Positions 1,078 to 47,706 of a DNA stretch of 64,000 bases are shown here, in pieces. Position numbers and translations under genes: made by a program. The notes under the pieces are model-generated. The model had not been told where the DNA came from and made no database searches. It saw nothing but the letters and a program-made list of their open reading frames with translations. Location: the sequence record NC_047815.1, one strand, 5' to 3'. The number at the start of each line of letters is the position of its first letter. The stretch's first letter is position 1.

Positions 1078-1569
1078 TTGGAAATCATTGTCAGCATTAG
1101 TGCCACAGGCGCTGAAAAGAGTCGCAATCGTGTGGACAGCCAAGAGTCCACCACTGGTCGTGTAGACCTCAGCGAATACACAAACCTTGAAAAGAAGATT
1201 CGTCAAACAGAGGAAGCAAAAGAGAAGCAAGATCTTGCTAAAAAGGCGAGTGGCGAAAATTCTGTAAAGAAAAAGAAAGCTACTAAACCTGATGCAGATG
1301 ATGCTGGTGGAGACGACGATGATGATTCAGCAGATAATGCCTCATTTGGATTCGACGACGACTCCTCAGATGACTCTGGATCTGATGATGGAGACGACTC
1401 CGATGATTCCTCAGATAGCAAGCCCAAGAAAGGTAAAGGAAAGAAACCAGCGTCCGATGATGAAGATGGATCTGACGAATCCGAAGGTGACGACGGGTCT
1501 GACTCTGATGAAGACGATTCAGGATCAGATGACGAAGAGGAACTTGACGAAGCAGACTTGGAAGAGTGA
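1078..1569 (+). CDS. acidic D/S-rich protein with N-terminal xIIxSLS-type tag
   Basis: TTG start 7 nt after AGGAG (1066-1070) gives MEIIVSISAT; C-terminal half D/S/E low complexity. Confidence 0.7.
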   Translation: MEIIVSISATGAEKSRNRVDSQESTTGRVDLSEYTNLEKKIRQTEEAKEKQDLAKKASGENSVKKKKATKPDADDAGGDDDDDSADNASFGFDDDSSDDSGSDDGDDSDDSSDSKPKKGKGKKPASDDEDGSDESEGDDGSDSDEDDSGSDDEEELDEADLEE

Positions 1570-1600
1570 CGTTGAGAAGTATGAGGCACTGCGTGATGTG

Positions 1601-2026
1601 ATGATAGCGATCAGCTATTCACTGAAAGTTATGCAGTATCCCTCGCTTCAGGCTTCTCTTGTGCAGCACAACAACCTGCTTGTGTTGAGTCACATTTGGT
1701 TCTGGGGAAAACCCAGTGACCAGTGGAGCTACTTTAAAAACCCTGTAGGTCAAACGAATCTTGTGTGGCTGGTGATGCAGCTTACGGGTGTTGCCTGTTA
1801 CTTCGGACTGACCCCTGTTGTTCACAGCTTTCACAGTTCTGGTTCTAATCCTCGTATGCTCGACACTATTCAACAGGTCAATCGACAGATTAGTGATCGC
1901 GCTCAGTATCAACGAGACAGACAGTTTGAACGCTGTGTAAGTCAAGAACTCGGTCTGCCTCCAACAGCCTTCTATGTATTACGGGAATTAAATTCCAATG
2001 GCCAAGTACAAATCGACAATCGCTAA
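1601..2026 (+). CDS. hypothetical protein
   Basis: GAGG at 1583 then GTG/ATG at 1598/1601; upstream part of track ORF 1292 is a shadow of the acidic gene. Confidence 0.6.
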   Translation: MIAISYSLKVMQYPSLQASLVQHNNLLVLSHIWFWGKPSDQWSYFKNPVGQTNLVWLVMQLTGVACYFGLTPVVHSFHSSGSNPRMLDTIQQVNRQISDRAQYQRDRQFERCVSQELGLPPTAFYVLRELNSNGQVQIDNR

Positions 2027-2657
2027 GACTCCTAAAAAGAGTCCTGCTGCTAAACAGGCTGAACAGCGTGCTAAGGGCATGCGTCAGATCAAAAGCGGCA
2101 AATACGAACAGGGTGTCAAGTCGATTTCAGAAGCAAACAAATCTCGTCGCATGACGCAGGGCGAGAAGCGTGCTGTATCGATTACCCCGTTCGTTCCAAA
2201 GCAAGTACCGCAGCCACCACAAACTCCTAAGAGCCTTAAGGGTTTGTCGATGGCAGCATTGATGAAGTCCTCGCCACGTCTGATGAAAGAAAACGCCTTA
2301 GAGTGTTACGTCAGCAACTACAAGCGGGGCAAGACTCCGAAAGGATTACCATTCGCTACAGCAAAAGTTAGGCACAAAGATCCACTTCGTCCTAACAAAA
2401 CCGTTCGACTGCATGAGTGTATGTTTTTAGCACTCGATGACCCAAACAAGCCTATCTCTAAACAGAAGCGTGTTTTGGCCAGTTGTGGTTGTGAGAACTA
2501 TGTGTTCATGTGGGAATATGCGAACGCCGAACACGGTGCAGCGCGTATCATTTATGGTAACGGAGAGCCGCCTGGTTTCACTAACCCAGCTCACGTTCCC
2601 GGCCTGTGTAAACACTTACTCGCACTCGCAGATGTAATTCGTCGTAACGGAGATTGA
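1998..2657 (+). CDS. basic SWIM-type zinc-finger protein
   Basis: SCGCENY...GLCKHL fits CxC-(n)-CxH SWIM signature. Confidence 0.65.
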   Translation: MAKYKSTIAKTPKKSPAAKQAEQRAKGMRQIKSGKYEQGVKSISEANKSRRMTQGEKRAVSITPFVPKQVPQPPQTPKSLKGLSMAALMKSSPRLMKENALECYVSNYKRGKTPKGLPFATAKVRHKDPLRPNKTVRLHECMFLALDDPNKPISKQKRVLASCGCENYVFMWEYANAEHGAARIIYGNGEPPGFTNPAHVPGLCKHLLALADVIRRNGD

Positions 2658-3037
2658 TCATGAATGCCCTACAGCGCGATGTTCACGAATTTGATGATCC
2701 ACAAAATCCTGCTTGGGTTCCTTACGCAATAAGAACCTTATCCGAACACAGGAAGTACATGTTCGCTAAACACGTCATAGAGCTTATCCATGCTGTTGAA
2801 ATGCTTGGTGCAAAGGGAAAACCAATCAGCCCAATGAATCCACGAGTATTTGAAAAGGACGGAGAGTTCTTACTGACAGTCGCGTTTAAGGCATTGTGGG
2901 CAACTCACGCCTACCGCAACGATCAACAGTTTGTTCTTTTGGGTTTTGCGATTGAACGTATCGCAATCCTATTGGCCGATAACGGCGTTTCAAAAAGTGA
3001 TTGTGAGCGTTTCCGTAAACTCCATCTCGGTATCTAG
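2654..3037 (+). CDS. hypothetical protein
   Basis: Overlaps upstream stop; no motif. Confidence 0.7.
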   Translation: MIMNALQRDVHEFDDPQNPAWVPYAIRTLSEHRKYMFAKHVIELIHAVEMLGAKGKPISPMNPRVFEKDGEFLLTVAFKALWATHAYRNDQQFVLLGFAIERIAILLADNGVSKSDCERFRKLHLGI

Positions 3038-3039
3038 CA

Positions 3040-3207
3040 ATGACAAAACAGAAAACAATCCCATTCAACTGTCCTCAAAGCAATCAGGTAGTTCAATGTA
3101 CGGCAACAGAAATGATGCGCATGATGTTGACTGATCTACGCAAGCAGGGACGTGATATTAATCACAGTGGCCTCGTGTCTCAGGCTCAGAAAGGAAAACA
3201 TGGCTAA
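3040..3207 (+). CDS. 55-aa small protein missed by ORF track (MTKQKTIPFNCPQSNQVVQC...)
   Basis: Fills gap exactly: starts 2 nt after upstream TAG and its stop overlaps the next start. Confidence 0.55.
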   Translation: MTKQKTIPFNCPQSNQVVQCTATEMMRMMLTDLRKQGRDINHSGLVSQAQKGKHG

Positions 3208-3733
3208 CTTCTTTACTGCTGATACTCACTACGCCTCTCAGCGTACTCTGGAACTCAGCCGTCGTCCATTCCCGTCAGTAACTGACATGGACGAAACAAT
3301 GATACTTCGCACCAACGCTATGTGTCGCGGCAGTGATGTGTTGTACAACGTTGGTGACTTCGGTGACTACCGTGTGGTGCGTCGTCTTGTTCCTAAAGTT
3401 GTATTGATTTGCGGCAACTATGAACACAACGATATTGAACGCGACTACGGCGGCAGCTTTGAAGAGTTCCGTCGTGCGCTGATCAAGATGGGATTCCGCG
3501 ACGTGTTGCTCAACAATCATGTTGTTGATGATATGTGGCTCAATCACTTTCCTAATCAGATGGTAGAAAGCCGCTTCAACTTGTTCGGGCACATTCATCG
3601 TCTACAGATGGTTCGACGCAACGGTCTCAACGTTGGCGTCGATTGTCACGACTATGCGCCTATCAGTTTGGACACTGTAAACTTCTATCGTAATGCGATT
3701 GAAAATCATTATGACGATGAGGTGTTCGGCTAA
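3200..3733 (+). CDS. calcineurin-like metallophosphoesterase
   Basis: DTH, GDF, GNYE, NH, GHIH motifs in canonical order; AAGGA SD before ATG 3200. Confidence 0.85.
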   Translation: MANFFTADTHYASQRTLELSRRPFPSVTDMDETMILRTNAMCRGSDVLYNVGDFGDYRVVRRLVPKVVLICGNYEHNDIERDYGGSFEEFRRALIKMGFRDVLLNNHVVDDMWLNHFPNQMVESRFNLFGHIHRLQMVRRNGLNVGVDCHDYAPISLDTVNFYRNAIENHYDDEVFG

Positions 3734-3742
3734 GGAGAACTG

Positions 3743-4219
3743 ATGTACAAGAAACCAATAGCGCGTGCGTTGTCTCGCAGCATCCCTCCACATGACTATA
3801 CTCCACTGTTTCATCCAGTAGGTCACGTCAATGTTGGAACTATCGGTACTGGTCTACATGAGGAGCTGATGCAAGAGCTGGCGATTGACTCTGTTGTCCG
3901 CAAGGCTCTCGACCATAATCATGCTGAGTTTCAAAAACAGTTGATAGGCAATGCCAGCTTTGAGACAACAGGCGACAACAGTTTCAACATGAATTTCGAT
4001 ATTGATATGTTAAAACATCAAATCGATCTGATGGAACAAGCACGTCAACGTCACCTCGACGTCACCTGTGAAGTACCTGAAGAGTTGCGTAGTATGTTCT
4101 TATCTCGCGGTATGACTGAGGAGGATGTGGATCGTGTGATTCTTTATCCTAATCGCTGTGAGATAGTGAACAATGCAGTTAACATTGTTTACAAGATGCA
4201 GCCTAAAGATGGCTTGTAG
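3743..4219 (+). CDS. hypothetical protein
   Basis: TAAGGAG SD; no motif. Confidence 0.75.
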   Translation: MYKKPIARALSRSIPPHDYTPLFHPVGHVNVGTIGTGLHEELMQELAIDSVVRKALDHNHAEFQKQLIGNASFETTGDNSFNMNFDIDMLKHQIDLMEQARQRHLDVTCEVPEELRSMFLSRGMTEEDVDRVILYPNRCEIVNNAVNIVYKMQPKDGL

Positions 4220-4424
4220 CAGTTGCGGTAGACGTGCCCGACGCATTCAGTATGGCGGAACAACGGCACCAACAACCGTTGAGCCAGTACCTGAGACATT
4301 AAGTGCTGCGCGTCTAACGCCTCATGGTTGGGTAAAGACCTGCGTTGTTTGCGGGCAAGTATCTGAACCTTCTCCGTTTGCTGATACTATTCCACAATCG
4401 TGTGACTGTAAACGCAACGCATAA
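4209..4424 (+). CDS. small Cys-rich putative Zn-binding protein
   Basis: CxxC at N-terminus, CxxC and CxC near C-terminus. Confidence 0.6.
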   Translation: MACSSCGRRARRIQYGGTTAPTTVEPVPETLSAARLTPHGWVKTCVVCGQVSEPSPFADTIPQSCDCKRNA

Positions 4425-4439
4425 ATATAAGGAAAGATA

Positions 4440-5021
4440 ATGTACACCGATGATCAAGGCAATGAAATCATTGAGCACGATGATGTAATCTCTGGTTTGC
4501 AGACCACGCTTGAAAAAGCTGTGCATACAGAACTGAACTACAACATCCTGTCCGACATTCGTTATGCTCACGAGATTCCTGTGTTTCCTCAGGCTCTCCA
4601 GAAAACTGACGAAGGCAACTATCATCTTGTGTATGATAGCTGTGGTGAAGATAGTTCAGAACTAAGCAAAAAGCGTGTACTGGATTTTCTGATAACTCCT
4701 ATCGCAGGTGAGAAGTACAGCGATACCTCTTTCCCGCGTCTGGTCTCTGATGTGAATTCTATCCTTCAGGATCTGCATGAATCTGGTCAGGGTCACGCTG
4801 CAATTTTAGGCCGTCGCTTAGACGATGGTTCAACTGCCGTCTATATTCGTGCGTTCAAGACAGGCGATTTCCCGTGTTCTGAACATCCAGAACTGTTGTT
4901 GGCTCAACCGCTTGGTCAACATCATTGTCGTATCTGCCGTGAAATGCAAATGGCAGGTTGTTTCCACTTACCACGAGAGTTCAACGATGAAGGTGAGCCT
5001 GTCAATGCCGAACAAGACTGA
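4440..5021 (+). CDS. hypothetical protein with C-terminal CxxH...HCxxC metal-binding motif
   Basis: TAAGGA SD; CSEHP...HHCRIC...GCFH. Confidence 0.7.
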   Translation: MYTDDQGNEIIEHDDVISGLQTTLEKAVHTELNYNILSDIRYAHEIPVFPQALQKTDEGNYHLVYDSCGEDSSELSKKRVLDFLITPIAGEKYSDTSFPRLVSDVNSILQDLHESGQGHAAILGRRLDDGSTAVYIRAFKTGDFPCSEHPELLLAQPLGQHHCRICREMQMAGCFHLPREFNDEGEPVNAEQD

Positions 5022-5475
5022 TGCGCAAGGTGGATATTGGGAAGTAGTTCCTGATGCTCGTAGCGAAACTGTACTGCGTCAGATCGCTGCGACGTTTATG
5101 GACACTGACGAACTGCCTGACCTGCATGTAACGCTTGCCTACGATGGTCGCAACCCAGAAGTGGAGGCCAAGGTAAATCCAGATGAAGTATTCAGCGCTA
5201 CTATTCGTGGTGCTGAACTGTTCGGCGACAAGTCAGACATTCTGGTACTGTTGCTTGATAGCGAAGAACTGCACGCAGAGCATCAACGCATTCATGCTTG
5301 TGGCTGCGCGAAGTTTGACTTCACACCTTACAACCCACACGTGAGTCTCAAGTACGGTGCACGTCAGGCTGAACTTGATCATTTACGTGAAATGGTATTT
5401 GTGCCTAATCGCCCTCCAATCGACTTGCTGTTTTCTGGTGAGCGTCGTGAGCTGGTGGACGAAAACGCACGATAA
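5005..5475 (+). CDS. acb1: 2H phosphoesterase, Acb1 / T4 gp57B-like
   Basis: Two HxT/S motifs (LHVTLAY, PHVSLKY); LVLLLDSEELHAEH...FDFTPYNPHVSL parallels gp57B as recalled; AAGGTGAG SD before ATG 5005. Confidence 0.8.
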   Translation: MPNKTDAQGGYWEVVPDARSETVLRQIAATFMDTDELPDLHVTLAYDGRNPEVEAKVNPDEVFSATIRGAELFGDKSDILVLLLDSEELHAEHQRIHACGCAKFDFTPYNPHVSLKYGARQAELDHLREMVFVPNRPPIDLLFSGERRELVDENAR

Positions 5476-5481
5476 CACAAG

Positions 5482-5505
5482 GCGGTGGCTTCGGCTGCCG
5501 CTTTT
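5482..5505 (+). terminator. intrinsic terminator
   Basis: GCGGTGGC-TTCG-GCTGCCGC followed by TTTT. Confidence 0.75.
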
Positions 5506-5524
5506 GACGTTCTGAGGAATTTTT

Positions 5525-5848
5525 ATGCAAATCGTATTCAGCCTAAGCAACAACGCCGAACCTATCTTTATCAAGGAGTCAATCGATCCTGCCTTAACCG
5601 AGCAAGCACGCGAAGCCCAGATTCGTCAACAAGAGCGTGAACTACGCGACCGTTATGGCTACGATGAACCTCAGTCAGAGATTGACAAGAAAGAAGCGGA
5701 ACGCATCAAGATCGAGCATGAGAAGGCAGAGCAAGACCGTTTGCCTAAACAACCTCCCGCAGAACTAGGCAAGAGCAAAATCGGTGAAGACGCGTCGGCT
5801 ACGTCCATCACTAATCGTCACGACAATTTGCCTAGCGCAAAGATTTAA
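5525..5848 (+). CDS. hypothetical protein with N-terminal xIVxSLS tag
   Basis: GAGG SD; starts MQIVFSLSN. Confidence 0.75.
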   Translation: MQIVFSLSNNAEPIFIKESIDPALTEQAREAQIRQQERELRDRYGYDEPQSEIDKKEAERIKIEHEKAEQDRLPKQPPAELGKSKIGEDASATSITNRHDNLPSAKI

Positions 5849-5890
5849 AACTGTAAAGATGCTGTAACGAATCAATAGGGCATCTGCTGT

Positions 5891-6925
5891 ATGAAGAATA
5901 AATCTAACCTGACAGGTGGCCAGATAGAAAGCGTCATGGACACCCTGCTCCACGATTGTCTGCGCGAGATCGTGGAGAGCACTGATGTGTTTGACGTTCA
6001 ACTGACCTACTTGTTGAGCATGATCACGCTGAATAAAAAGCGTAAGCCACACAATGCTTCGAATCGCGACCGTGCTATCAGCTTGCTTATCCGAGCACTG
6101 AGCAGTCCGCGTGAAGAAAAGATGCAGTACATAATGGAACTGAAAATGGAGCGAAACTTCATTTATATGTTCCTGCAAAATGTAATTAACCGCTACTATG
6201 GACAGTATGTTGAACTCTACAGAAAGTTCATCTGCACCAAAGATCCTATAGCGCGTAAAACTTATGGCAAACAGCTTGATGCGTTTGTTCGTACCGTTGG
6301 CGCCAAGAACAGATCCAGTTTCTTTGTTGCGCTGAACAATCTCAATGACCTTATGCCGCACTTCACTGAATACTTCCATTCAGTTGTTGATGACTTCTAT
6401 CGACTGTGTACGGCACAAGCCAAGTTTTATGTCGATACCAATAAAGGTAAGCAGTACGATACCAAAGACGTCAAGCAGAACTTTTTACGCAACGTCATTA
6501 TTGCTATCAACAAGTATGATTCATCGCGTGGTGCGATTGTGTCATACGTCAAGTGGTGGATCTTGAACGCACAGACCTGTAGCTCGTCAGAACACGAGTA
6601 TGGCATTTCGTATACAATACCGCAGACCCAGAGGAAAAAGCTGGCAAGCGGTCAAGATACCACCTCAGTGAATTTCTCTGTTAGTCTTGATGCACCTACA
6701 AGCGAATCAGATGAAGGGATGGACGCATCTTTGCATCACAAGGTCAGTGATAGCCATAACCTTGAAGACGCAGTAGACAGCGGAAGACGTGCTGAGAAAC
6801 TGGGGCTGTTAATAAAGCGTATCGATCCCATGGGAATCGCGCGCCTCACAATGGACATACCTGAGGTGTTCGAACAGGAAGAACGTGAGTTGATGCGTAA
6901 ATATATGCTCCAGCAGGGCCTGTAA
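5891..6925 (+). CDS. phage RNA polymerase sigma factor (sigma70 family)
   Basis: Region-2-like LRNVIIAINKYDSSRGAIVSYVKWWI, followed by region-3-like SVSLDAP. Confidence 0.8.
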   Translation: MKNKSNLTGGQIESVMDTLLHDCLREIVESTDVFDVQLTYLLSMITLNKKRKPHNASNRDRAISLLIRALSSPREEKMQYIMELKMERNFIYMFLQNVINRYYGQYVELYRKFICTKDPIARKTYGKQLDAFVRTVGAKNRSSFFVALNNLNDLMPHFTEYFHSVVDDFYRLCTAQAKFYVDTNKGKQYDTKDVKQNFLRNVIIAINKYDSSRGAIVSYVKWWILNAQTCSSSEHEYGISYTIPQTQRKKLASGQDTTSVNFSVSLDAPTSESDEGMDASLHHKVSDSHNLEDAVDSGRRAEKLGLLIKRIDPMGIARLTMDIPEVFEQEERELMRKYMLQQGL

Positions 6926-6935
6926 ATAACTTTGG

Positions 6936-6945
6936 AATCTGTAAA
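6936..6945 (+). promoter_or_regulatory. AATCTGTAAA box, putative phage-sigma promoter
   Basis: Intergenic, upstream of SSB gene; identical copies at 32755, 61477, 62144, 62201. Confidence 0.6.
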
Positions 6946-6985
6946 AAGAAGTATCACAGAAACCGCTCAATTTTGAGGATTTATA

Positions 6986-8248
6986 ATGGGACGTGGATTT
7001 GACGCCATTCCAGACAATAGCTCACGCGATAACTTGCGTGAAGGTGATATTTTTGAAATCTACCCACTAGCAAAGAAAGCAAACAACACATGGGTGTCGT
7101 TGCGTCTTCTGCCTGGCGATCTGCTGCCGATTAAAAAGCACTGGATTCGCATCATGGGTGGCAAAGACAAAGATAAAGCCATCAAGATTCCACGTATGTG
7201 TGTTAGCTTTGACCCAGACAATCAAGGTCAAGAACTGCGCGGCATGAAGTGTCCTTACTGTGGCATCGAACATGGTAATGATGAGTCCGGCGCACCAGCA
7301 CAGTACGATTTCAAATGGTATGCTCAAGCGATTGTTCGTGATCTGCAAGCAGCCAAGCCTAAGCGTGTTGCACAGCATACCAAGAAAGAAAAGCAGACAG
7401 GCAAGAAAGAAAAGACCAGTGAAAGCTGGACGCCAGTTGTTGCTATCGGTATGTCAAATGCAATGGCGGGCAAGATTCGTCAGATGGGTGAACGTAACTT
7501 TGCTCAGGTCAAAGACAAAAAGTCTGGTCAAAAGATCAAGAAAGCGTTTCCTATCACTGATGCAAAGTACGGTATCGATATTGATATTAAGTACAGCCCG
7601 AAAGCTGCGCCTGCTGATCGTTACTCGTTCGAGAAAGGTGAACGTACACCTCTGACCGAAGAAGAACGTGAATATCTGACCTGGGACTTTGATAACTGGG
7701 AAGAGATCTATAATCTGCTTGGTCGTCTCGATGAAAAAGGCGCGTTGGCTGACTTTAAAAAGATGGACGTTATCGGCGGTGAATCTACCGAGTCAGATGA
7801 TGACGACGATGACGACGATGATGACGACGATATGGCGCTTGGCCGTAAGAAGAAAGGCAAAGCTGATAAGTCGTCCAAGAAAAAGAAACGTTCGTTGGAC
7901 GATGACGACGAAGACGATGATGAAGACGAAGATGATCTGCCTAAGAGCAAGAAGAAAGGCAAGTCCTCCAAGACTTCTAAAACAACCAAGTCTAAGCGTT
8001 TGCTTGACGACGACGAAGACGACGATGAGGATGATGAGCCTAAGAAGAAAAAGTCGTCCAAACTCAAGTCCAAGTCTTCTGTGAAGAAGAAAAAGAAAAC
8101 CGTTCTTGACGACGATGAAGATGAAGACGACGCGCCGAAGAAGAAAAAGAAATCTTCCAGCAAGTCGGTCAAGTCTTCCTCAGTGAAGAAAAAGAAAAAG
8201 TCTTCTGATGACGATGAACCCGTCAAGAAGAAAAAGAAAAAGAAGTAA
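6986..8248 (+). CDS. gp32-like single-stranded DNA-binding protein with long D-block/K-block tail
   Basis: LRLLP...HW...C...CPYC Zn-site pattern as in T4 gp32; next to UvsX; last ~155 aa low complexity. Confidence 0.7.
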   Translation: MGRGFDAIPDNSSRDNLREGDIFEIYPLAKKANNTWVSLRLLPGDLLPIKKHWIRIMGGKDKDKAIKIPRMCVSFDPDNQGQELRGMKCPYCGIEHGNDESGAPAQYDFKWYAQAIVRDLQAAKPKRVAQHTKKEKQTGKKEKTSESWTPVVAIGMSNAMAGKIRQMGERNFAQVKDKKSGQKIKKAFPITDAKYGIDIDIKYSPKAAPADRYSFEKGERTPLTEEEREYLTWDFDNWEEIYNLLGRLDEKGALADFKKMDVIGGESTESDDDDDDDDDDDDMALGRKKKGKADKSSKKKKRSLDDDDEDDDEDEDDLPKSKKKGKSSKTSKTTKSKRLLDDDEDDDEDDEPKKKKSSKLKSKSSVKKKKKTVLDDDEDEDDAPKKKKKSSSKSVKSSSVKKKKKSSDDDEPVKKKKKKK

Positions 8249-8259
8249 GTTAATCAAAC

Positions 8260-8288
8260 GGGGTGGCTAGCGCCGCCCCTTTGTTTTT
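8260..8288 (+). terminator. intrinsic terminator
   Basis: GGGGTGGC-TAGC-GCCGCCCC then TTTGTTTTT. Confidence 0.8.
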
Positions 8289-8309
8289 CTCAACCGAGTA
8301 CAAGATCAC

Positions 8310-10820
8310 ATGGCTAAAGTAGCGAAAGAGAAAGAGAAAAAGACTAAGATTAAGAAGTCCAAGACAGCAACAGCAGTGGCAACTACACTTGACGATATGG
8401 AAACTGGTGTTGTCGGTTTCGATATTGGGGATTTGATGGATGATCAGCTTGACCTGATCGAAAAGAAAACTAAAGTAAGCTCAGGCACAGCAGAACGTAA
8501 CGCACCTCGTGTATCAACAGGCCAGCTTGCGCTTGACATGTTCCTGAGTGGTGGCATCGTATCTGGTGGCTGGTATACGTTTAGTGGCGGTGAGCAGTCA
8601 TGTAAATCGACTCTCACGATGGCAATCATGGCCAGCCTGATTAAACTTGAATACGGCGGTATCAGTGCTGTGTTTGACTATGAAGGTTCAACAGATGCTG
8701 ACTATGTTGCTGGTCAGTTGAAAACGTTTGGCGTTACTGTTGACCCACGTACCATCTTTGGTGTGCGTGATGATACGAGCGGTGATTGGTTGATCAAACC
8801 TCGTATTCGTTACTATGCGCCAGACAACGGCACTCGCTTCTTTGACTGGATGAGTTCGCTGCGTCGCCGTCTGCCTGACAAGATTGTTGAGAAAGACGGT
8901 ACAGCATACATGTTGTTTGAGAACAACAAAGAGAATGCTAAAAAGCTGGCAGGTAAGTACGACAAGAAGTGGTTCAGTCGTCACAATCAGTTTAAAGTGC
9001 GTGCACCTGATGGTCACATGCAAGCAATGGTAATCGTTGATAGTTATCCTGCGATGCTGCCTGATCAGCTTGATGATGATGAAGGTTCAAACGCGATGGC
9101 GATTCAAGCGCGTATGTTCTCTGATGGTATCAAGCGTTTCCGTGGCGGTATGCGTGGTAAGATGATCACCATCGTCGGCGTTAACCAGTTACGTCAGAAG
9201 CCTGCGACCATGTTTGGTTCGCCCGAATATGAGCCCTGTGGGGACGCTCTCAAGTTCTACTGCTTTGACGCTACCACACTGATTCGTACCAACTTCGGTG
9301 TATTGACAGCGCCTGCTATTCAGAGCATGATGGCAGACGGTACAGAAGTGCTGGTGGAAACGCTGGGTGGCTTCGAACCTATCATGAAAGCATGGCGAGT
9401 TGAAGAACAACGCACTCCACTTGAATTGACCACAGCAGGCACAAGCTATATCGGCAGTGATCAACACCGCCAGCTAGTGTTCTATCGTGACGTTACTGAT
9501 CACAACGAGCCCGCGCTGCGAACTGAGTTCGCCACACTGAGCGATATTCAGTCTGCGAGCGGTGAAGTGTATGCGGTGATGCGTCTGTCCACTGTAGACG
9601 AACTGATGGAGTACAGCCACAAAGAGCGTAACGCCAGCCTGCGTTATGTCAATCAGTTCCTGCGTAGCGATGCCGTCAACACAATGATCAATGTCAGTGA
9701 AGGCTATCAGGTAGTTGCCGCTGTGTTGCGTGTTGGTGAGAATCACGTTGCGACTGTTATCTCAAGCCTGCTTGACCTTGGCATTATCAGCTACGAAGCC
9801 GCTAATCATACCGTGATCATTCCTGGTCTGAGTGTAGGCACAATGCGTACAGCTATTCTTGATTCAGTCACAACTGTTGAGAACAGCCTGATTCAACGTA
9901 GCGTTATGTTGCACCTCGCAATCGCAGACGCATTCCCTGAGCTGGCAAACTTTGTTGGTAAGTACAATCTTGCTGCTAACCTGCATGAAGCCGCGCACTT
10001 CGGTTCACACTATCAATCAGATGATTATGCATATCTGGCGGACAGCGAATCGATGGAGAAAGCACTCAAGCGTTTGGTCGCTCGTGACTTCCCTGAGTTT
10101 GCTGATCAGTATGATGAGATCTCACGTCAGGCGGCATACATTGATGACCTGTTAAGTCTCGATGAAAACTTGTACCCTGTCGCTTGCTCAGTGCGTGCTG
10201 TATCAGAGCAACAGCCCGTTGAATTGTGGGATGTTACTGTACCCGCCACCAGCGCTGTTGTTACTAACGGCTTTGTCAGTCATAACTCAGACGTGCGCAT
10301 TCGTCTTGCTTCGCGTGCTGTACCTCAAGGCTGGCCGACGCTTAAAGATGAACGTGCTATTGTTGGAGAGAAGTCTGTTACCGTTGAAGGTGGTATTGAC
10401 CGCTATCGTTTCATCGCTGCTAAGACCATCAAGAACAAGATGGGCGGCATCCCGAATCAGCAGACGTGGTTACGTTTGTGGGAAGCAGATGGCAATGGCG
10501 AAGCGCGTGGCTTTGACCCTGTGTTTGATACGTGGCACTATCTGAAAACGCTTGGTCTAATCAACGGTATGCGCAAGAAGTTCAAGATCAAAGCGCCTTG
10601 TCCTATCGCCAGCGATAAAGCGATGGACTGGGATCAGTTCCGTACTCTGATCAACGGAAGCAAAGCACAGATTACAGAAGTCTGTAAAGAACTTGGTGTG
10701 AAGCCTGGCAGTCTTCGCGCTTGGTGCTTCAAATTCATCGCCAGTGAAAAAGGTCAGGCTATGCTGAAAGACAGCATCAGCCGCAGTACCAAACAGAACG
10801 ACGACGAAGACGAAGATTAA
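8310..10820 (+). CDS. uvsX: RecA/UvsX recombinase interrupted by an intein
   Basis: Walker A-like GGEQSCKST, DYEG, VIVDS, ARMFS, NQLRQK, PEY..GDALKFY|SDVRIRL. Confidence 0.9.
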   Translation: MAKVAKEKEKKTKIKKSKTATAVATTLDDMETGVVGFDIGDLMDDQLDLIEKKTKVSSGTAERNAPRVSTGQLALDMFLSGGIVSGGWYTFSGGEQSCKSTLTMAIMASLIKLEYGGISAVFDYEGSTDADYVAGQLKTFGVTVDPRTIFGVRDDTSGDWLIKPRIRYYAPDNGTRFFDWMSSLRRRLPDKIVEKDGTAYMLFENNKENAKKLAGKYDKKWFSRHNQFKVRAPDGHMQAMVIVDSYPAMLPDQLDDDEGSNAMAIQARMFSDGIKRFRGGMRGKMITIVGVNQLRQKPATMFGSPEYEPCGDALKFYCFDATTLIRTNFGVLTAPAIQSMMADGTEVLVETLGGFEPIMKAWRVEEQRTPLELTTAGTSYIGSDQHRQLVFYRDVTDHNEPALRTEFATLSDIQSASGEVYAVMRLSTVDELMEYSHKERNASLRYVNQFLRSDAVNTMINVSEGYQVVAAVLRVGENHVATVISSLLDLGIISYEAANHTVIIPGLSVGTMRTAILDSVTTVENSLIQRSVMLHLAIADAFPELANFVGKYNLAANLHEAAHFGSHYQSDDYAYLADSESMEKALKRLVARDFPEFADQYDEISRQAAYIDDLLSLDENLYPVACSVRAVSEQQPVELWDVTVPATSAVVTNGFVSHNSDVRIRLASRAVPQGWPTLKDERAIVGEKSVTVEGGIDRYRFIAAKTIKNKMGGIPNQQTWLRLWEADGNGEARGFDPVFDTWHYLKTLGLINGMRKKFKIKAPCPIASDKAMDWDQFRTLINGSKAQITEVCKELGVKPGSLRAWCFKFIASEKGQAMLKDSISRSTKQNDDEDED
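9261..10286 (+). mobile_element. intein (342 aa, residues 318-659), probably with degenerate endonuclease region
   Basis: Begins CFDATT after ALKFY, ends TNGFVSHN before Ser; block-F-like LWDVTVP. Confidence 0.9.
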
Positions 10821-10885
10821 TAATCAGCCTGGACAAGGACGTCCACCCAACCTATCTCGATAGCCCACAGCGGCAGGAGAAAACT

Positions 10886-11617
10886 ATGCACGCAATCCAA
10901 ATCGAAAGCCCAGAAGTATTTGAAGGTATTATGCATGGCTTTATGCATAAAGGCATTACACAAGAAGCGCATACGCATTCGTCGCCTGAGGTATTGTACA
11001 TTAGTACCTCAGACAGAGCAGCCGATTTTGAAGTCAAAGGCATTCTGCGTAAAAATTCTGTACCTCACACTTTCATTGCGTGTGGTTACACTTCCATAAT
11101 GAGCCGAATTCGAGGTCGCACTCGCAGCAATATCACTGTGATGCTTTCTCCAGAAGTGCTGCACATAGACCCTATCTTGTTTTGCGGTAAAATGTCTGAA
11201 CTAATCGAATTTGGATCGTGTACCACGCTGATTGCCTTCGGTCCAAACAATGAAGTTATGCTTGAAGCTATCCGCAATCGCATGTACTCGAACTATAAAA
11301 GTCGCAATCCAACATTCGTTGAAGGAAGCGTACAGCTCACGAGTAACCTCAACTTCGAGGAGTTCCGCATGTGTGTTAGTCGTGTAGAAGCCTCCTTGAC
11401 GATAGGTGATTCTAATACTCCACTGTCTCAACTTAGCCGTCAGTATTTCTTTGGCGAAGAATTCTTGGCACTGGACCAACACGAGTTTCATGCCGACCTG
11501 CTGAAAATCGCGCAAAGCATTATGCCTAGCGACAGTATGGTGTTTCATCCTAAGGTACTAGAGCGGTTGTTCCGTGAAGTTCTTTGTAGCTTGAAGCTAA
11601 CGAACGTGATCCTGTAA
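10886..11617 (+). CDS. hypothetical protein
   Basis: AGGAG SD; no motif. Confidence 0.75.
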   Translation: MHAIQIESPEVFEGIMHGFMHKGITQEAHTHSSPEVLYISTSDRAADFEVKGILRKNSVPHTFIACGYTSIMSRIRGRTRSNITVMLSPEVLHIDPILFCGKMSELIEFGSCTTLIAFGPNNEVMLEAIRNRMYSNYKSRNPTFVEGSVQLTSNLNFEEFRMCVSRVEASLTIGDSNTPLSQLSRQYFFGEEFLALDQHEFHADLLKIAQSIMPSDSMVFHPKVLERLFREVLCSLKLTNVIL

Positions 11618-11631
11618 CACTATAAACAATC

Positions 11632-11655
11632 AGAGCGGCTTCGGTCGCTCTTTTC
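11632..11655 (+). terminator. intrinsic terminator
   Basis: AGAGCGGC-TTCG-GTCGCTCT then TTT. Confidence 0.75.
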
Positions 11656-11672
11656 ATATCTGAGGAACACGT

Positions 11673-12698
11673 ATGTCTGATAAGCCTTGGCACTTAGAAA
11701 TTCACGATTCAACCATCAGCAACAACTTTTCTATCGGCATGAGTCGCAAGCATATGACCGCTGCGTTTGAAAAGTACATCGAAAAGAATAGTGGTCAAAT
11801 TCCATTTTACGCTTTCTCGTTTGAGGAGTTCTGTCGCTGGGCTGGCGATAGACATGTGCCTTGGAAAGATAAACCTGTACGCGCTAGTGTTATGCATAGC
11901 GTGAATCTTATCTACGGACAATTTCTCTGGTCCTTTACCAAAGGTTGTTTCTCACCTGAGAAAGGGCTGCTTGAGTATTTAATAAACAGTGAACTTCCTA
12001 AGACGTTTCCTGTCTCTATGTTGCGTCGTCTGCCTCACTGGTCACAATGGATAAACACAAATCTATGTGTTGATTACACCTCCTCTGGTACAATGTATTC
12101 CATCGAGAGTACAGGATTTTGGGCAACCTACTGCATGATTGAGGGACGCACGAATCTTTCTCTTTTCGGTCTAGGTCTGTTCAAGAATGGAGAGCAAGAC
12201 AGAGAGATTATGAATGTTCAGGCCATGTTTGAGATTGAAGAAGATCGACCAATCGAAGACACTCTGGAAACATTCATGTTTCTTATGGGAAGCGAAGGTA
12301 GATACGGTGTTGAGGAGACGCACCCTGATTACGAAAATATTCGTGATGCTATCATTGCTTGGGTAAAGCAAGCGGCCAACATCATTCTGTTTGTATCGAG
12401 TCAGGTAGATGACCTATACAAAGGCGGTGTCAAGCAAGTACAACCTCGACGTAAAGGTAAAAGCTATAAACTTATGCCTGTCGCTAAAGAGCGTAATTGG
12501 TCTGTCGGCACAGAGTTCCTGAACCCTATACGCGAGTATGAAAAAACTATAGGCACCATGACGTCTATTCAAAAGCGTGCTGCCCATATTCGTCGCGGTC
12601 ACTACCATAGTTTCTGGCGTGGACCTCGCGATGGACAACGTGAATTATTCAGCAAATGGTTGCCACCAACAGTTGTCAGAGGAACTTTAGAAACATAA
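11673..12698 (+). CDS. hypothetical protein with C-terminal HxRRGH motif
   Basis: GAGG SD; AHIRRGHYHSFWRGP...KWLPP. Confidence 0.75.
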   Translation: MSDKPWHLEIHDSTISNNFSIGMSRKHMTAAFEKYIEKNSGQIPFYAFSFEEFCRWAGDRHVPWKDKPVRASVMHSVNLIYGQFLWSFTKGCFSPEKGLLEYLINSELPKTFPVSMLRRLPHWSQWINTNLCVDYTSSGTMYSIESTGFWATYCMIEGRTNLSLFGLGLFKNGEQDREIMNVQAMFEIEEDRPIEDTLETFMFLMGSEGRYGVEETHPDYENIRDAIIAWVKQAANIILFVSSQVDDLYKGGVKQVQPRRKGKSYKLMPVAKERNWSVGTEFLNPIREYEKTIGTMTSIQKRAAHIRRGHYHSFWRGPRDGQRELFSKWLPPTVVRGTLET

Positions 12699-12743
12699 GA
12701 ATATTCTTAGTCCTTTTCTCTAATTTAAACACGTTGGCAAGAA

Positions 12744-13049
12744 GTGCTGACGCTGATTATTAATTGGGGAATTATTTTTATGTGTGTTCGATCTCTGGTG
12801 AAACTGGCATACTGCGAACGCCGCGCCGAGTGGTGTAAGCCTTATGTTAATGCATCCCTGTCTCAAACCAAGACAGCCCAGAAGGTAGACTGTTCTGCAT
12901 TTACAACAGCTATGAAGGGTTGTCGTCCTGTTCAACTATCTCCCAATCTCGTCAACTTTTATCGTGAAAACGAATTGGTTGGACAGACTGTATGGAAAGA
13001 AGAAGAAGGCGATAGTGAATTGCAGTTCCGTCTGCTCACAGCACATTAG
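12744..13049 (+). CDS. hypothetical protein (start uncertain, GTG 12744 or ATG 12780)
   Basis: ORF fills gap; no motif. Confidence 0.55.
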   Translation: MLTLIINWGIIFMCVRSLVKLAYCERRAEWCKPYVNASLSQTKTAQKVDCSAFTTAMKGCRPVQLSPNLVNFYRENELVGQTVWKEEEGDSELQFRLLTAH

Positions 13050-13055
13050 TACATA

Positions 13056-13091
13056 GGGCACTTGAGATTATTCTCGGTGCCCTTTCTCTTT
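13056..13091 (+). terminator. probable intrinsic terminator
   Basis: AGGGCAC...GTGCCCT stem with inner GAGA/TCTC, then TTCTCTTTT. Confidence 0.55.
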
Positions 13092-13137
13092 TGTATGCTA
13101 ATTTCGATGACAAGACACAACCACAACGGAGAATGTC

Positions 13138-13797
13138 ATGGAAATCATTGTATCGCTGTCTTTTCAGCAGCCGAAAGAACCGCCCATCATCAGTTATGAT
13201 CCGCAAAAAGCTCCTCATGTGAATGACAACAGCAAGCCCGGTCAAGTGTTTGACTTGCACACGCTGCAACAGATGAGCTACCTCGACATGCGTAAAGTTC
13301 GAGGTGACGGTGGTGCGAAGTATGCTAAGGTGATTGCTGACTGGCTTAATGGTCAACGCAACATTGAAGTAAAGTTCCGTGTATCAAAGCGTAGCAAGAT
13401 CTCGATCGAGGTCAAGAACACAAAGCAAGAAGCAGCACGCTATACCACTGTGTATCTTCTTAGCCCAGAACGTTCAAAGTCCAAGAGCTGGATGCTGATT
13501 GGCGAAGGCCCGCACAACAACGTCAACTCTGTAGACCTTGGTGGTCGCTTGCAGCCTGACGTATTGTACGCAACAGCACGCAGTTTGCTTGGAGCGCATT
13601 TGCCTACTGACGAGTGGCCAGGAGACAACACTTGTGAGCAGGTAATTTTCAAGTTCGACAAGATGCGTAAAGAACATAAAACTGTTCCTGATCGTGCTTA
13701 CCGTTACGTAAACAAAAACGAATCCCAGATAATCACCATGATGCAAGATGGCATGAGCATCGATGCGATTGTGGCTTGGGTACTTAAACAAAGCTGA
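13138..13797 (+). CDS. hypothetical protein with N-terminal xIIxSLS tag
   Basis: GGAG SD; starts MEIIVSLSF. Confidence 0.75.
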   Translation: MEIIVSLSFQQPKEPPIISYDPQKAPHVNDNSKPGQVFDLHTLQQMSYLDMRKVRGDGGAKYAKVIADWLNGQRNIEVKFRVSKRSKISIEVKNTKQEAARYTTVYLLSPERSKSKSWMLIGEGPHNNVNSVDLGGRLQPDVLYATARSLLGAHLPTDEWPGDNTCEQVIFKFDKMRKEHKTVPDRAYRYVNKNESQIITMMQDGMSIDAIVAWVLKQS

Positions 13798-13804
13798 GGA
13801 AACT

Positions 13805-15262
13805 ATGAGCATCATTTCATTATCGGCCACAGCCGCACAGAAGGACGCTGCCGTCTATTTGTTTGGCTCTAAAGGGCACAGCATTATCGCTGCTATTGAA
13901 GCACTGGCTAAGTCCAAAGAACTCAACACTCCTCATCTGAATGGTCTGATGGCCATGCTGAAAGAAGCGGAAGATGATGAGATCATCAAGTTCAAAAACA
14001 GCGCTGGTGGCAAAAAGTCTATTGAGGCTGCAAAGCAGTTAGTTACGGCCAAGACTCTGGTAACCAGCATCAAGGCGCTGCGTGCTGTTAAGGTTCCGTC
14101 TAAGTGGATTCCTAATCACGATGACGTCAAGAACCAAGCTGTATCTGAAACCGTTGTGCATCGCGCTACTGGTCGCGGTACTCGTCCGAAGAAAGCTGAA
14201 CAGATGGTAAATCCTCAGGCACCTGAAGCAGAGGAGATTGATGACTACGCACAGTACGCAGACATTAAAAATCTAGCTGCCAAAGTTCAGGACGCTCTCG
14301 AAGAAGATCATGAGATGGACGTCAAGATTACTGGTCATGCTGCGAAAGGTAAAGGTTCTTCTGCATATATGGAGGTTAAACAAGGGCGTCGTGTATTAGG
14401 TTCAATCTTTGTTCCTTACGCCGGTCGTCAAGTCCGCAGTGGTGAGTGGTTTAACGCGTCCGAAATCACGATGCAAGTCGAAAGTTTCGAACACAACGAC
14501 ATGGTTTATGATAAGATGAAGGGCTTAGGTCTTATCGACGTTGCTGGGTCAATCGCTGACAAGTTTGCAGAGCTTGCAGAGAAAGCTAACAAAGGTCCAG
14601 ATACAACTTCTCGTCGTAAAGATGGTGCTCGTATGGAAGCAGTAACCAGCGATTACCCTAACAGTTTTAGAATTGACCCAGAGCGTAACCCTGGATTAAT
14701 TGCTAAGATTGATCCTTACTTTAATAAAATTTCAGGCAAGAAAAACAGATCTGTTCAAGCCCGAGGTATTGTCAACTTCTCGTTTGCTACCAAACGTGAT
14801 ATGAACAGCGTGATTAAACAGTTTGACCTGACTTTGAACGCTATCGGTGATGCATTCTATCACCCACCAAGAGTTGTTGGCAGCGTAGTGCCTAGTAAAA
14901 CTGCGGCCAAACGCACTACGACAAATTCAGACCTGTTTACGATCGGTAACGGTGCTACTACCGTTAAATCTGTCAAGCGTGTCAATAACGGTGGCATTGA
15001 AATTCAATTCGCTGGTCCGAAGCCTTCATCAGTTCTCGTCAGTACAGAAGATGAATGGTTAGTAGTTGAGAACAAGCGTGGCGGTCAGAGTGGTTGGGAC
15101 GTTGCTGCGGAATTCTTGAACAAAGCAATCGTTGCCGCAGGTTCTTCTGTTGTTGAGCAGTCAGACCAAGCGGGCTATGAAGGATTTAAGCTGCCTAATG
15201 ATGCGGAAGTTGATAAGGTTATTGCTTATCTCGCCAAACTTAAAATCAACGCAAAAAAGTAA
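13805..15262 (+). CDS. 485-aa protein with N-terminal SIISLS tag, candidate virion protein
   Basis: GAGG SD; starts MSIISLSAT; ends GCA AAA AAG TAA. Confidence 0.75.
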   Translation: MSIISLSATAAQKDAAVYLFGSKGHSIIAAIEALAKSKELNTPHLNGLMAMLKEAEDDEIIKFKNSAGGKKSIEAAKQLVTAKTLVTSIKALRAVKVPSKWIPNHDDVKNQAVSETVVHRATGRGTRPKKAEQMVNPQAPEAEEIDDYAQYADIKNLAAKVQDALEEDHEMDVKITGHAAKGKGSSAYMEVKQGRRVLGSIFVPYAGRQVRSGEWFNASEITMQVESFEHNDMVYDKMKGLGLIDVAGSIADKFAELAEKANKGPDTTSRRKDGARMEAVTSDYPNSFRIDPERNPGLIAKIDPYFNKISGKKNRSVQARGIVNFSFATKRDMNSVIKQFDLTLNAIGDAFYHPPRVVGSVVPSKTAAKRTTTNSDLFTIGNGATTVKSVKRVNNGGIEIQFAGPKPSSVLVSTEDEWLVVENKRGGQSGWDVAAEFLNKAIVAAGSSVVEQSDQAGYEGFKLPNDAEVDKVIAYLAKLKINAKK

Positions 15263-46275: not shown

Positions 46276-47706
46276 ATGATTACTTATCACGATGTACCAG
46301 CAAGTGAAGTTCAAGACCATTCTGCTGCTGCGCGTCATATTGCTATGACTATCGCCTCAGAGCTAGTTGAGCACATTGCAGACGCGCACCGTCCACCTTT
46401 GCGGAAGACCAAGCGTTTGAAATTTGATGTGACCAAGTTCTCTGTCAACTGGATGCTAGTGATTGCTGAGGCGTTGCGTCTTGACTATTGCCGTGAGCTT
46501 GCCCAGCCTTATCGAAATGACTTTCTGAGTCTGATAGAGATCGACTCAGACGAGGTTCAACTGACCGTTGATGATCTACAGTTGATCCGTGCGCTTGATA
46601 TGAAAGGCATTAATCGCAGTCACAACTTGTCGTGGAACAAAGTTAGTTCTGAATTTGATATGACACAGGGTACATTAAAGCTGTTGCGTCACGAGGAGTT
46701 CTTCCGCAGCAAAGAACTGTTTGCAGATTTCATGCAGCGCCTCATCGAAACTGTAGAACAAGGCCATCGTGATTGTACGCGAGATACTGATCCAAGTGAG
46801 TTGGACGATCAGTTGTTTGACCTGCATAATGTGCTGAATCGTGTGTGGCAACAGCATTGCATGGAGTTCGGTCGACGCAATATTATCTCTCTGAGCGAAG
46901 ATGCCGAGTGGGCCATGACGTTAACCCGTGCTAACTTGACCAGTAACTCAACAATGGATCAACGTTTTGGTGAGCGTATTCTCTATCGACAGCATCTGTC
47001 CGATGCGTTTGAGGTGTTGAGCGTTGCCTCAAGCAAGGACAGTCTTGCATATCATTTAGAAGCTGTGATGTGCTTGCTGTATAATCTCGAAATTGAAAAC
47101 GATATTGATGATGACCTCGTTGTTCAGATCAAACGCAAGCTGGACGACAGTCTTTTATCGCTTAATGAAAACTTGCATGGCGATTATCTGCCTGATTGGA
47201 ATCTATTGTCTTTAGTACAGACCAAAGCCGGAACGCCAAATCAACCGACAGTTGAATCTATGATTGCATATCTGACCGAGCATAGCACTGTATCTAAACG
47301 TATGCTAGATGCAGTGGGTGAGGATGATATTCGTGAACTGTACATGAAGACCCTTGCAGACTCCGAAGACGCAATCGACGCTGACGAAGACGAAGAAGAT
47401 GAGGACGAGGAAGAAGACGATCCAGCTTGTATTTCTCCAATGCCTAACTATCTTCATTCCGTCCAGGAGTCGCAGATTGCACGCATGGTCACTCCTTGCG
47501 ATCTAGCCGGTAATCTTGCACTCAAGCGTCCGACCTTTGAGTTTTCTGTTGCTGGTCAAGTATTCGCTCTCAACATCTTTCAGGTTCAAGCAGCACCTGT
47601 TGATGTGTATGTTCCGTCTCGCGCACTGATTCATGCAGTGTATTCTAATCTGATTGCTCTTGGTGTATTCCATCAGGACAACGACAAACCACAGTGGGTA
47701 CGCTAA
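46276..47706 (+). CDS. acidic hypothetical protein
   Basis: AAGGA SD. Confidence 0.8.
   Translation: MITYHDVPASEVQDHSAAARHIAMTIASELVEHIADAHRPPLRKTKRLKFDVTKFSVNWMLVIAEALRLDYCRELAQPYRNDFLSLIEIDSDEVQLTVDDLQLIRALDMKGINRSHNLSWNKVSSEFDMTQGTLKLLRHEEFFRSKELFADFMQRLIETVEQGHRDCTRDTDPSELDDQLFDLHNVLNRVWQQHCMEFGRRNIISLSEDAEWAMTLTRANLTSNSTMDQRFGERILYRQHLSDAFEVLSVASSKDSLAYHLEAVMCLLYNLEIENDIDDDLVVQIKRKLDDSLLSLNENLHGDYLPDWNLLSLVQTKAGTPNQPTVESMIAYLTEHSTVSKRMLDAVGEDDIRELYMKTLADSEDAIDADEDEEDEDEEEDDPACISPMPNYLHSVQESQIARMVTPCDLAGNLALKRPTFEFSVAGQVFALNIFQVQAAPVDVYVPSRALIHAVYSNLIALGVFHQDNDKPQWVR

Follow-up and report, generated by a model that had tools for sequence, protein, structure and literature searches.

A portable N-terminal leader on unrelated proteins of Erwinia phage vB_EamM_Yoloswag that probably works like a capsid-targeting sequence

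Why should proteins that have nothing else in common begin with nearly the same seven or eight residues? This question is raised by a 64 kb stretch of the genome of Erwinia phage vB_EamM_Yoloswag (the window, 64,000 nucleotides, identical to positions 186001-250000 of NC_047815.1/KY448244.1, 259.7 kb), in which the products of four genes, gp226, gp236, gp243 and gp244, share a short N-terminal leader. Yoloswag is a 'hairy' jumbo myovirus of the PaBG/Lu11-related group (PMC6143709, PMC7412058). An earlier inspection of the window (the original prediction) had proposed that the shared N-terminus is a T4-like localisation tag or a prohead-protease propeptide. The analysis reported here, in which all the evidence for that idea is comparative, suggests that the shared N-terminus is probably a portable leader that works like the T4 capsid-targeting sequence (CTS) and is removed by a protease, although its sequence is different. 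The leader was not mentioned in the literature found on Yoloswag, Y3, AD1/JA11, PaBG, the comparative genomics of jumbo phages and prohead proteases, a body of work that did not include the Y3 virion-proteome paper. The papers on PaBG and on Dickeya jumbo phages mention neither the leader nor any processing, and no such targeting code is described for the PaBG/Lu11/Yoloswag jumbo phages in the literature found.

A leader shared by nine unrelated proteins

The four N-termini in the window read (M)EIIVSIS/AT in gp226, MQIVFSLS/NN in gp236, MEIIVSLS/FQ in gp243 and MSIISLS/AT in gp244, where the slash marks the predicted cut. Their starts at window positions 1078 (TTG), 5525, 13138 and 13805 are the annotated starts of the respective coding sequences (CDS), and a Shine-Dalgarno-like sequence lies 5-8 nucleotides (nt) upstream of each. 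The peptides listed in the original prediction were therefore confirmed, and gp244 shares the tag in a form that is one residue shorter (7 residues), as the gap drawn in that list had implied. In the order gp226, gp236, gp243 and gp244, the first serine is encoded by AGC, AGC, TCG and TCA, the second serine by AGT, AGC, TCT and TCG, and the residue between them by ATT, CTA, CTG and TTA. Since the codon families of the serines and of the residue between them differ among the copies, conservation is at the level of the peptide, as had been proposed, though three copies have the bases GAA ATC ATT GT in common.

The rest of the genome beyond the window was searched with degenerate DNA patterns in which the motif lies directly 3' of a start codon. 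Together with the four proteins of the window, the matches at gene starts gave nine tagged Yoloswag proteins in total, the five outside the window being gp183, gp198, gp199, gp124 and the Nudix hydrolase gp117 (Table 1); pattern matches away from gene starts were almost all out of frame. The annotated GTG start of gp117 lies 12 nt downstream of an ATG that overlaps the preceding stop codon (TAATG), and the gp117 orthologues in other phages begin with the full leader. The true start is probably this upstream ATG, which would restore MEIIVSLS and correct the annotation. The leader comprises 7-8 residues in the nine proteins and follows the consensus M-[E/K/Q]-[I/L]-phi-[V/I]-S-[L/I/M/F]-S, where phi is hydrophobic, usually with A as the next residue. 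Its invariant core is S-phi-S, mostly followed by A and preceded by two or three hydrophobic residues.

The position of the motif is specific to N-termini. From residue frequencies, the per-site probability of the motif is 2.7e-6, so that about 0.0009 copies would be expected among the N-termini of the 333 annotated CDS of the genome; eight strict N-terminal copies and the shorter one of gp244 were observed. Within the window, which holds 99 annotated CDS (19,652 residues), the core motif I-[IVLT]-[VILF]?-S-[LIF]-S was present at residue 3 in 4 of the 99 CDS compared with one in about 19,550 internal positions, the sole internal match being at residue 203 of the CDS at 46276 (Fisher P = 3e-9, odds ratio about 820). 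Beyond the leader, the bodies of the nine tagged proteins are unrelated: an all-against-all BLASTP of the nine without their first 12 residues gave a best E value of 0.03 in a nine-sequence database, which bears out the earlier statement that the remainder of each protein is different. The leader is thus portable, and the set that carries it ranges from 83 to 717 residues and includes both very basic (gp198, gp199) and very acidic (gp226, gp183) members.

A DNA-pattern scan of IMG/VR returned six loci only, of which two were Yoloswag itself and two were probably chance matches. One locus, at 60-85 of the uncultivated IMGVR_UViG_3300011693_000001 (259,605 nt), has a good ribosome-binding site and encodes a protein starting MEILVSLS/ASALGEND. 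No obvious counterpart of this protein was seen among the nine Yoloswag proteins, although no formal comparison was made. The occurrence of MEILVSLS/A on yet another protein in an uncultivated relative suggests that the tagged set differs between related phages.

Orthologues in other phages keep the residue pattern. The gp226 orthologue begins (TTG)EIFVSMS/AP in pEa_SNUABM_5 and MIVFISLS/QT in Y3, and that of gp236 begins MEIIISLS/NT and MEMLISLS/HE, respectively, the residues that follow the gp236 leader being unconserved. In pEa_SNUABM_5, the orthologues of gp243 and gp244 start with MEIMISLS/FK and MSIISIS/AT. In the pEa_SNUABM_5 and Y3 pairs, the 10-15 residues past the leader can barely be aligned, whereas the changes within the leader are conservative. 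Among homologues of gp244, S-[L/I/T]-S/A stands directly before a conserved xxKAQKDAA in 35 of 35, even though leader length differs between the Yoloswag clade (7 residues) and the Alexandra/Y3 clade (13 residues; MSLIKIEGVASTS/AP). The Nudix orthologues begin M-x-[I/L/V]-x-[V/I]-S-[L/M]-S/AK, followed by a linker of variable length, and a distant cellular Nudix protein is without the leader; in gp117 the Pfam Nudix domain begins at residue 28, 20 residues past the end of the leader. Collectively, the diversity of codons and the retention of the pattern in orthologues whose neighbouring residues diverge indicate that selection acts on the peptide. The scans of the full genome and of relatives that the original prediction had called for thus extended the four copies to nine and found the pattern kept in pEa_SNUABM_5 and Y3.

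Leader exchange and the head module

The evidence that bears most directly on function comes from gp183. The databases contain 282 relatives of its N-terminal domain (about 300 residues); the C-terminal halves of these proteins are very variable, and leader classes were counted on the best 120 of the 282. The conserved core of the family starts ALKPSQYR..VKGWDK. An S-x-S leader stands directly before this AL in 82 of the 120 proteins and is exactly 8 residues long in 70 of the 82. In 32 others a leader ending in E, mostly of 8-10 residues, occupies the same position (for example MRYKEFAIE/AL, MDLLNDLLE/AL and MKLQELFE/AL), with L or I at P3 in 23 of the 32, and only 6 of the 120 have neither class. 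The glutamate-type leaders all come from phages other than Yoloswag. In T4, the prohead protease gp21 recognises [L/I]-x-E and cuts directly behind it. The prohead proteases of T4 and phiKZ cut after glutamate (PMC9026906, PMC5694885), and the N-terminal propeptides of T4 internal proteins, 10-19 residues in length, direct these proteins into the core of the prohead and are afterwards cleaved off (PMC9026906, PMC5694885, PMC9958956). In evolution, the S-x-S leader can be exchanged for a T4-type leader at one position before one core, and the occurrence of two mutually exclusive types there, one of them the established T4 type, is best explained as the same device fitted to two reading enzymes.

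Two phages with glutamate-type leaders were examined further. The homologue in Atu_ph07 reads MQYTDLIE/AL, and this phage encodes a homologue of T4 gp21 (PMC6102473 supplement). ORF132 of RsoM2USA is also a gp183 homologue with a glutamate-type leader (...NTLME/AL), and it ranks among the ten most abundant protein bands of the RsoM2USA virion (PMC8504454). An AlphaFold2 model of gp183, made from a 38-sequence alignment, had a mean predicted local distance difference test (pLDDT) score of 73. Exactly residues 1-8 formed the only N-terminal segment of low confidence (pLDDT <50), and residues 11-20 averaged 87, which places the leader outside the predicted fold. A Foldseek search with this model gave no significant PDB match, and its matches in BFVD were limited to uncharacterised homologues, and the matches of a gp183-family profile to the PDB were helical repeats only, which were judged spurious. 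In the gp183 homologues of the more distantly related Pseudomonas jumbo phages HRDY3 and Lu11, the leaders have drifted to MELQLALA/AV and MKIALDFMGTAAVSMRS/AL, respectively, and the pattern of small residues at P3 and P1 may vary by lineage.

From these comparisons we infer prohead targeting, the position of the cut and the cutting enzyme. During head assembly, the leader would hold the protein in the scaffold or core of the prohead. After closure of the shell, a head protease of the gp142 type would cut after the second serine (P3 = S, P2 = hydrophobic, P1 = S). The 8-residue peptide would then leave, and the mature protein would stay in the capsid with the DNA.

The head module offers candidates for both the scaffold and the protease. 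Its genes lie on their coding strand in the order protease gp142, gp141, gp140, gp139 and major capsid protein. The gp142 protein matches PHROG 18299, 'head maturation protease'. In phages of Dickeya, Xanthomonas, Pseudomonas, Rhodococcus and Gordonia, its relatives bear the annotation of a prohead or capsid maturation protease. Related sequences also occur in many mycobacteriophages, which we take to be those of cluster C, where most of them are annotated as hypothetical only. The gp140 protein has two Cys-rich zinc-ribbon-like motifs, a stretch of about 150 residues that are nearly all D or E, and a C-terminal part that is helical; from its sequence it looks like an acidic scaffold-like head protein, and its gene is sited where a scaffold gene is expected. 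It contains eight S-[LIVMF]-S motifs compared with 2.5 in composition-preserving shuffles (P = 0.0025), and Alexandra and JA11 keep three of the eight, FDSLS, VS[L/I]SR and S[V/F]SNA. Such enrichment would be expected if a scaffold-degrading protease recognised S-phi-S, and it lends modest support to this specificity. Together, the leader swap in the gp183 family, the RsoM2USA virion protein, the gp183 model and the gp140 motifs make a portable N-terminal peptide tag of the T4 capsid-targeting or prohead-propeptide kind, as the original prediction had proposed, the best supported explanation; its motif, in contrast, is not that of T4.

Several observations weigh against this interpretation. 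No Pfam or PDB sequence match, T4 gp21 (Peptidase_S77 family) included, was found for gp142 even with a four-sequence profile, and its label as a protease comes from PHROG and from database annotations. The processing enzyme could instead be gp141, a predicted zincin metallopeptidase of the same head module. The sequence TSVS/AAQQ of the major capsid protein (residues 73-76, at the point from which the protein is homologous to the phage G capsid chain 6wkk) was considered as a cut site and was given no weight because it is not conserved in Alexandra, JA11, PaBG and RSL1. The tagged genes lie outside the head module, among replication, recombination and early-looking genes, and in KY984068 their Y3 orthologues carry no annotation other than 'hypothetical protein'. 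To our knowledge, serine at P1 has been described for no characterised prohead protease. The T4, phiKZ and SPN3US proteases all cut after glutamate (PMC9026906, PMC5694885, PMC10052503). Finally, leader class and protease family were compared in a handful of genomes. We give an even chance to the wider proposal that the Yoloswag-like jumbo phages have a second, independent 'capsid address code', read by a family of head proteases that cuts after serine.

Alternative readings and the tagged genes

In one alternative, unconnected with the capsid, the leader would be a docking motif, a short beta-strand that adds to the sheet of a binding partner; this partner could be a chaperone, a replication component (sliding clamp or replisome), a membrane site, the tail or 'hair' assembly, or some comparable apparatus of phage or host. 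The leader is beta-strand-like, with alternating hydrophobic residues; several tagged genes adjoin DNA-metabolism genes, and Yoloswag encodes its own clamp loader and polymerase subunits. Docking is nevertheless unlikely in our view, since the leader does not resemble known clamp-binding motifs, and since neither the [L/I]-x-E leaders at the same position in gp183 relatives nor the abundant virion protein in that family would be explained. Less likely again is a pro-sequence without a role in packaging, whose removal by gp141, gp142 or a host protease would activate the proteins. The invariance of S-x-S/A in leaders whose length varies from 7 to 13 residues does fit a cleavage site better than a binding epitope, and the head module has a gene for a second peptidase. 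However, an unstructured extension of 8 residues is unlikely to mask nine unrelated folds, several of which are probably disordered, and the equivalent T4 leader both targets and is cleaved (PMC9026906). By sequence alone, such a pro-sequence would look the same as the main reading.

We consider it improbable that the leader is an N-terminal degradation signal that times the lifetime of the proteins through a host AAA+ protease (Lon, ClpXP or FtsH) or a phage protease. A hydrophobic N-terminus that is exposed can serve as a degron, and the tagged genes are in early- or middle-looking regions, but the gp183 family includes an abundant virion protein, and evolutionary alternation with the motif of a prohead protease would not be expected of a degron. 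Conservation at the level of the messenger RNA, with a translation-initiation or regulatory element over the first codons and the peptide as its by-product, is very unlikely. Although GAA ATC ATT GT is shared by three copies with synonymous positions included, codons 6-8 keep their amino acids across codon families (AGC/AGT compared with TCN; ATT, CTA, CTG, TTA), orthologues change nucleotides while keeping the residue pattern, and the regions upstream of the tagged genes are dissimilar. Chance, or an ordinary first beta-strand of a shared fold, can be set aside almost entirely: only the shortness of the motif speaks for it, against nine N-terminal matches where about 0.001 were expected, unrelated bodies, and a leader that lies outside the gp183 fold and 20 residues ahead of the Nudix match of gp117. 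A Sec, Tat or lipoprotein signal peptide, which would need a basic n-region, at least 10 residues of hydrophobic core and an A-x-A or lipobox cleavage site, was also rejected, the leader being 8 residues long, with 3-4 hydrophobic residues, usually an acidic residue at position 2, and no lipobox cysteine.

The features discussed are listed in Table 1. In the window, Pfam, PHROG and NCBIfam searches with gp226, gp236, gp243 and gp244 gave no function. The mature part of gp226 is extremely acidic, of low complexity and rich in D, E and S; the protein matches phrog_30142 (unknown function) and no Pfam family. The gp236 gene lies just upstream of a gene for a phage sigma factor. Transcription in Yoloswag is by the host RNA polymerase with the phage sigma factor, and genes for a multisubunit phage RNA polymerase, a tubulin or a nucleus shell are annotated nowhere in the Yoloswag record. 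An intrinsic-terminator-like hairpin (window 5481-5505, plus strand) lies within the 49-nt gap between gp235 and gp236. Its GC-rich stem of 8 bp contains two G-U pairs and is closed by a UUCG loop, with TTTT on the 3' side, so that gp236 may have its own transcript start. A sub-threshold match of gp243 to aureocin A53 was taken as chance. For gp244, the AlphaFold2 model was poor (mean pLDDT 48), and no fold could be assigned. The annotated product of gp227 (window 1601-2026, plus strand) begins MIAISYSL, which bears a faint likeness to the shorter leader. It was examined as a possible tenth tagged protein and rejected because its pEa_SNUABM_5 and Y3 orthologues are without the pattern and because its start is uncertain, a longer open reading frame beginning at 1292. 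Both gp183 and gp244 belong to families with a carrier-plus-variable-cargo architecture. Lengths run from 267 to 728 residues in the gp244 family and from about 400 to 1000 in the gp183 family, with a conserved N-terminal module and very variable C-terminal parts, and some gp183 relatives carry DUF4116, LRV or CbtA-like Pfam domains.

Table 1. Leaders, tagged genes and head-module genes of Yoloswag. Positions are those of the window unless NC_047815.1 is named; pI, isoelectric point; slash, predicted cut.
Feature	Position	Strand	Length (residues)	Remarks
gp226 leader	1078..1101	+	8	(M, TTG start) E-I-I-V-S-I-S; predicted cut before A9
gp226 CDS	1078..1569	+	163	mature part pI 4.1, net charge -34
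gp236 leader	5525..5548	+	8	M-Q-I-V-F-S-L-S; predicted cut before N9
gp236 CDS	5525..5848	+	107	small, charged; no family match
gp243 leader	13138..13161	+	8	M-E-I-I-V-S-L-S; predicted cut before F9
gp243 CDS	13138..13797	+	219	basic, pI 9.4
gp244 leader	13805..13825	+	7	M-S-I-I-S-L-S; predicted cut before A8
gp244 CDS	13805..15262	+	485	conserved N-terminal domain of about 150 residues, then variable C-terminal part
gp183	outside window		717	MEIVVSLS/AL; pI 4.7
gp198	outside window		86	MEIVISFS/AD; pI 10.7, very basic
gp199	outside window		146	MEILISLS/QS; pI 11.4, very basic
gp124	outside window		83	MKITLSLS/QS; Cys-rich
gp117, Nudix hydrolase	start region, NC_047815.1 about 83237-83249 (outside window)	-		MEIIVSLS/AR
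gp140	NC_047815.1 101141-103183	-	680	annotated 'ATPase'; PaBG homologue labelled '60S ribosomal-like protein'
gp141	NC_047815.1 103266-104348	-		KMPT-N domain (Pfam PF20294, E = 1e-30) and HELAH zincin motif

If the leader is indeed a capsid-targeting sequence, the packaged and possibly ejected proteome of the Yoloswag-like clade could be read from the genome. The packaged set would include a Nudix hydrolase, an acidic possible DNA mimic and histone-like basic proteins, and 'hypothetical' proteins that travel with the genome would become predictable, including enzymes that could be at work within seconds of the start of infection. It would be speculation to assign the Nudix enzyme or the acidic protein a part in countering host defences. 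The finding would also define the probable specificity of a head-protease family that extends to mycobacteriophages, and it would provide a short tag for loading foreign cargo into capsids of large capacity.

Comparison with known systems

The closest parallel is the CTS of T4. In T4, the CTS marks diverse, fast-evolving internal proteins that enter the cell with the injected DNA and counteract host defences, and it has also been used to load foreign proteins into phage heads. Apart from one large protein, the core proteins of T4 are small and either basic or acidic, and the Yoloswag set similarly has small basic, small acidic and a few large proteins. Core components listed for T4, without sizes or charges, are IPI-III, gp67, gp68 and Alt (PMC9958956). 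As with the gp21-removed CTS of IPI-III, Alt and other core proteins, the Yoloswag element is a short N-terminal leader on otherwise unrelated, fast-evolving proteins, its invariant part is at its C-terminal end, and T4-type and S-x-S leaders replace each other at the same position of the gp183 family. Leaders are 7-13 residues long in the Yoloswag-type families compared with 10-19 in T4. In contrast to the T4 leaders, those of Yoloswag end in S-[L/I/F]-S with no conserved glutamate at P1 and are without the defining [L/I]-x-E ending; gp142 has no detectable sequence similarity to gp21, to any Pfam family or to any PDB chain; and the tagged genes are scattered rather than clustered in a variable internal-protein ('IP') locus.

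The jumbo phages phiKZ, 201phi2-1 and SPN3US also have many internal head proteins with protease-removed N-terminal propeptides, which are thought to target the prohead, and several cleavage motifs in scaffold-like regions. Propeptides of the phiKZ/SPN3US type are cut at S/A/G-x-E by gp175 or gp245 (PMC10052503, PMC9026906); they are mostly 100-250 residues long, only two being of about 20, and they share no portable tag (PMC10052503, PMC5694885). The Yoloswag-type leaders, in contrast, are 7-13 residues long and end in S-x-S. The lineage also differs, since Yoloswag is related to PaBG, Lu11 and RSL1 and has a capsid protein of HK97 size (PMC7412058).

Two further systems are similar in part. 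The concept of polyvalent or carrier-domain proteins delivered with phage DNA is that of Iyer et al. 2017, as cited in PMC7824862. Like these proteins, the gp183 and gp244 families combine a conserved N-terminal module with variable C-terminal parts, and a KMPT-N zincin is encoded in the head module; unlike them, the Yoloswag element is an 8-residue leader on separate small proteins and not part of a fused giant polypeptide. The cargo-loading peptides of encapsulins likewise show that a short terminal peptide can direct unrelated cargo enzymes into a shell of the HK97 fold, although these peptides are usually C-terminal, are not removed by a protease and serve a bacterial nanocompartment. With a leader that has no glutamate before the predicted cut and a candidate protease, gp142, that has no sequence match to gp21, the Yoloswag device is best described as one that probably works like the T4 system but is not a member of it.

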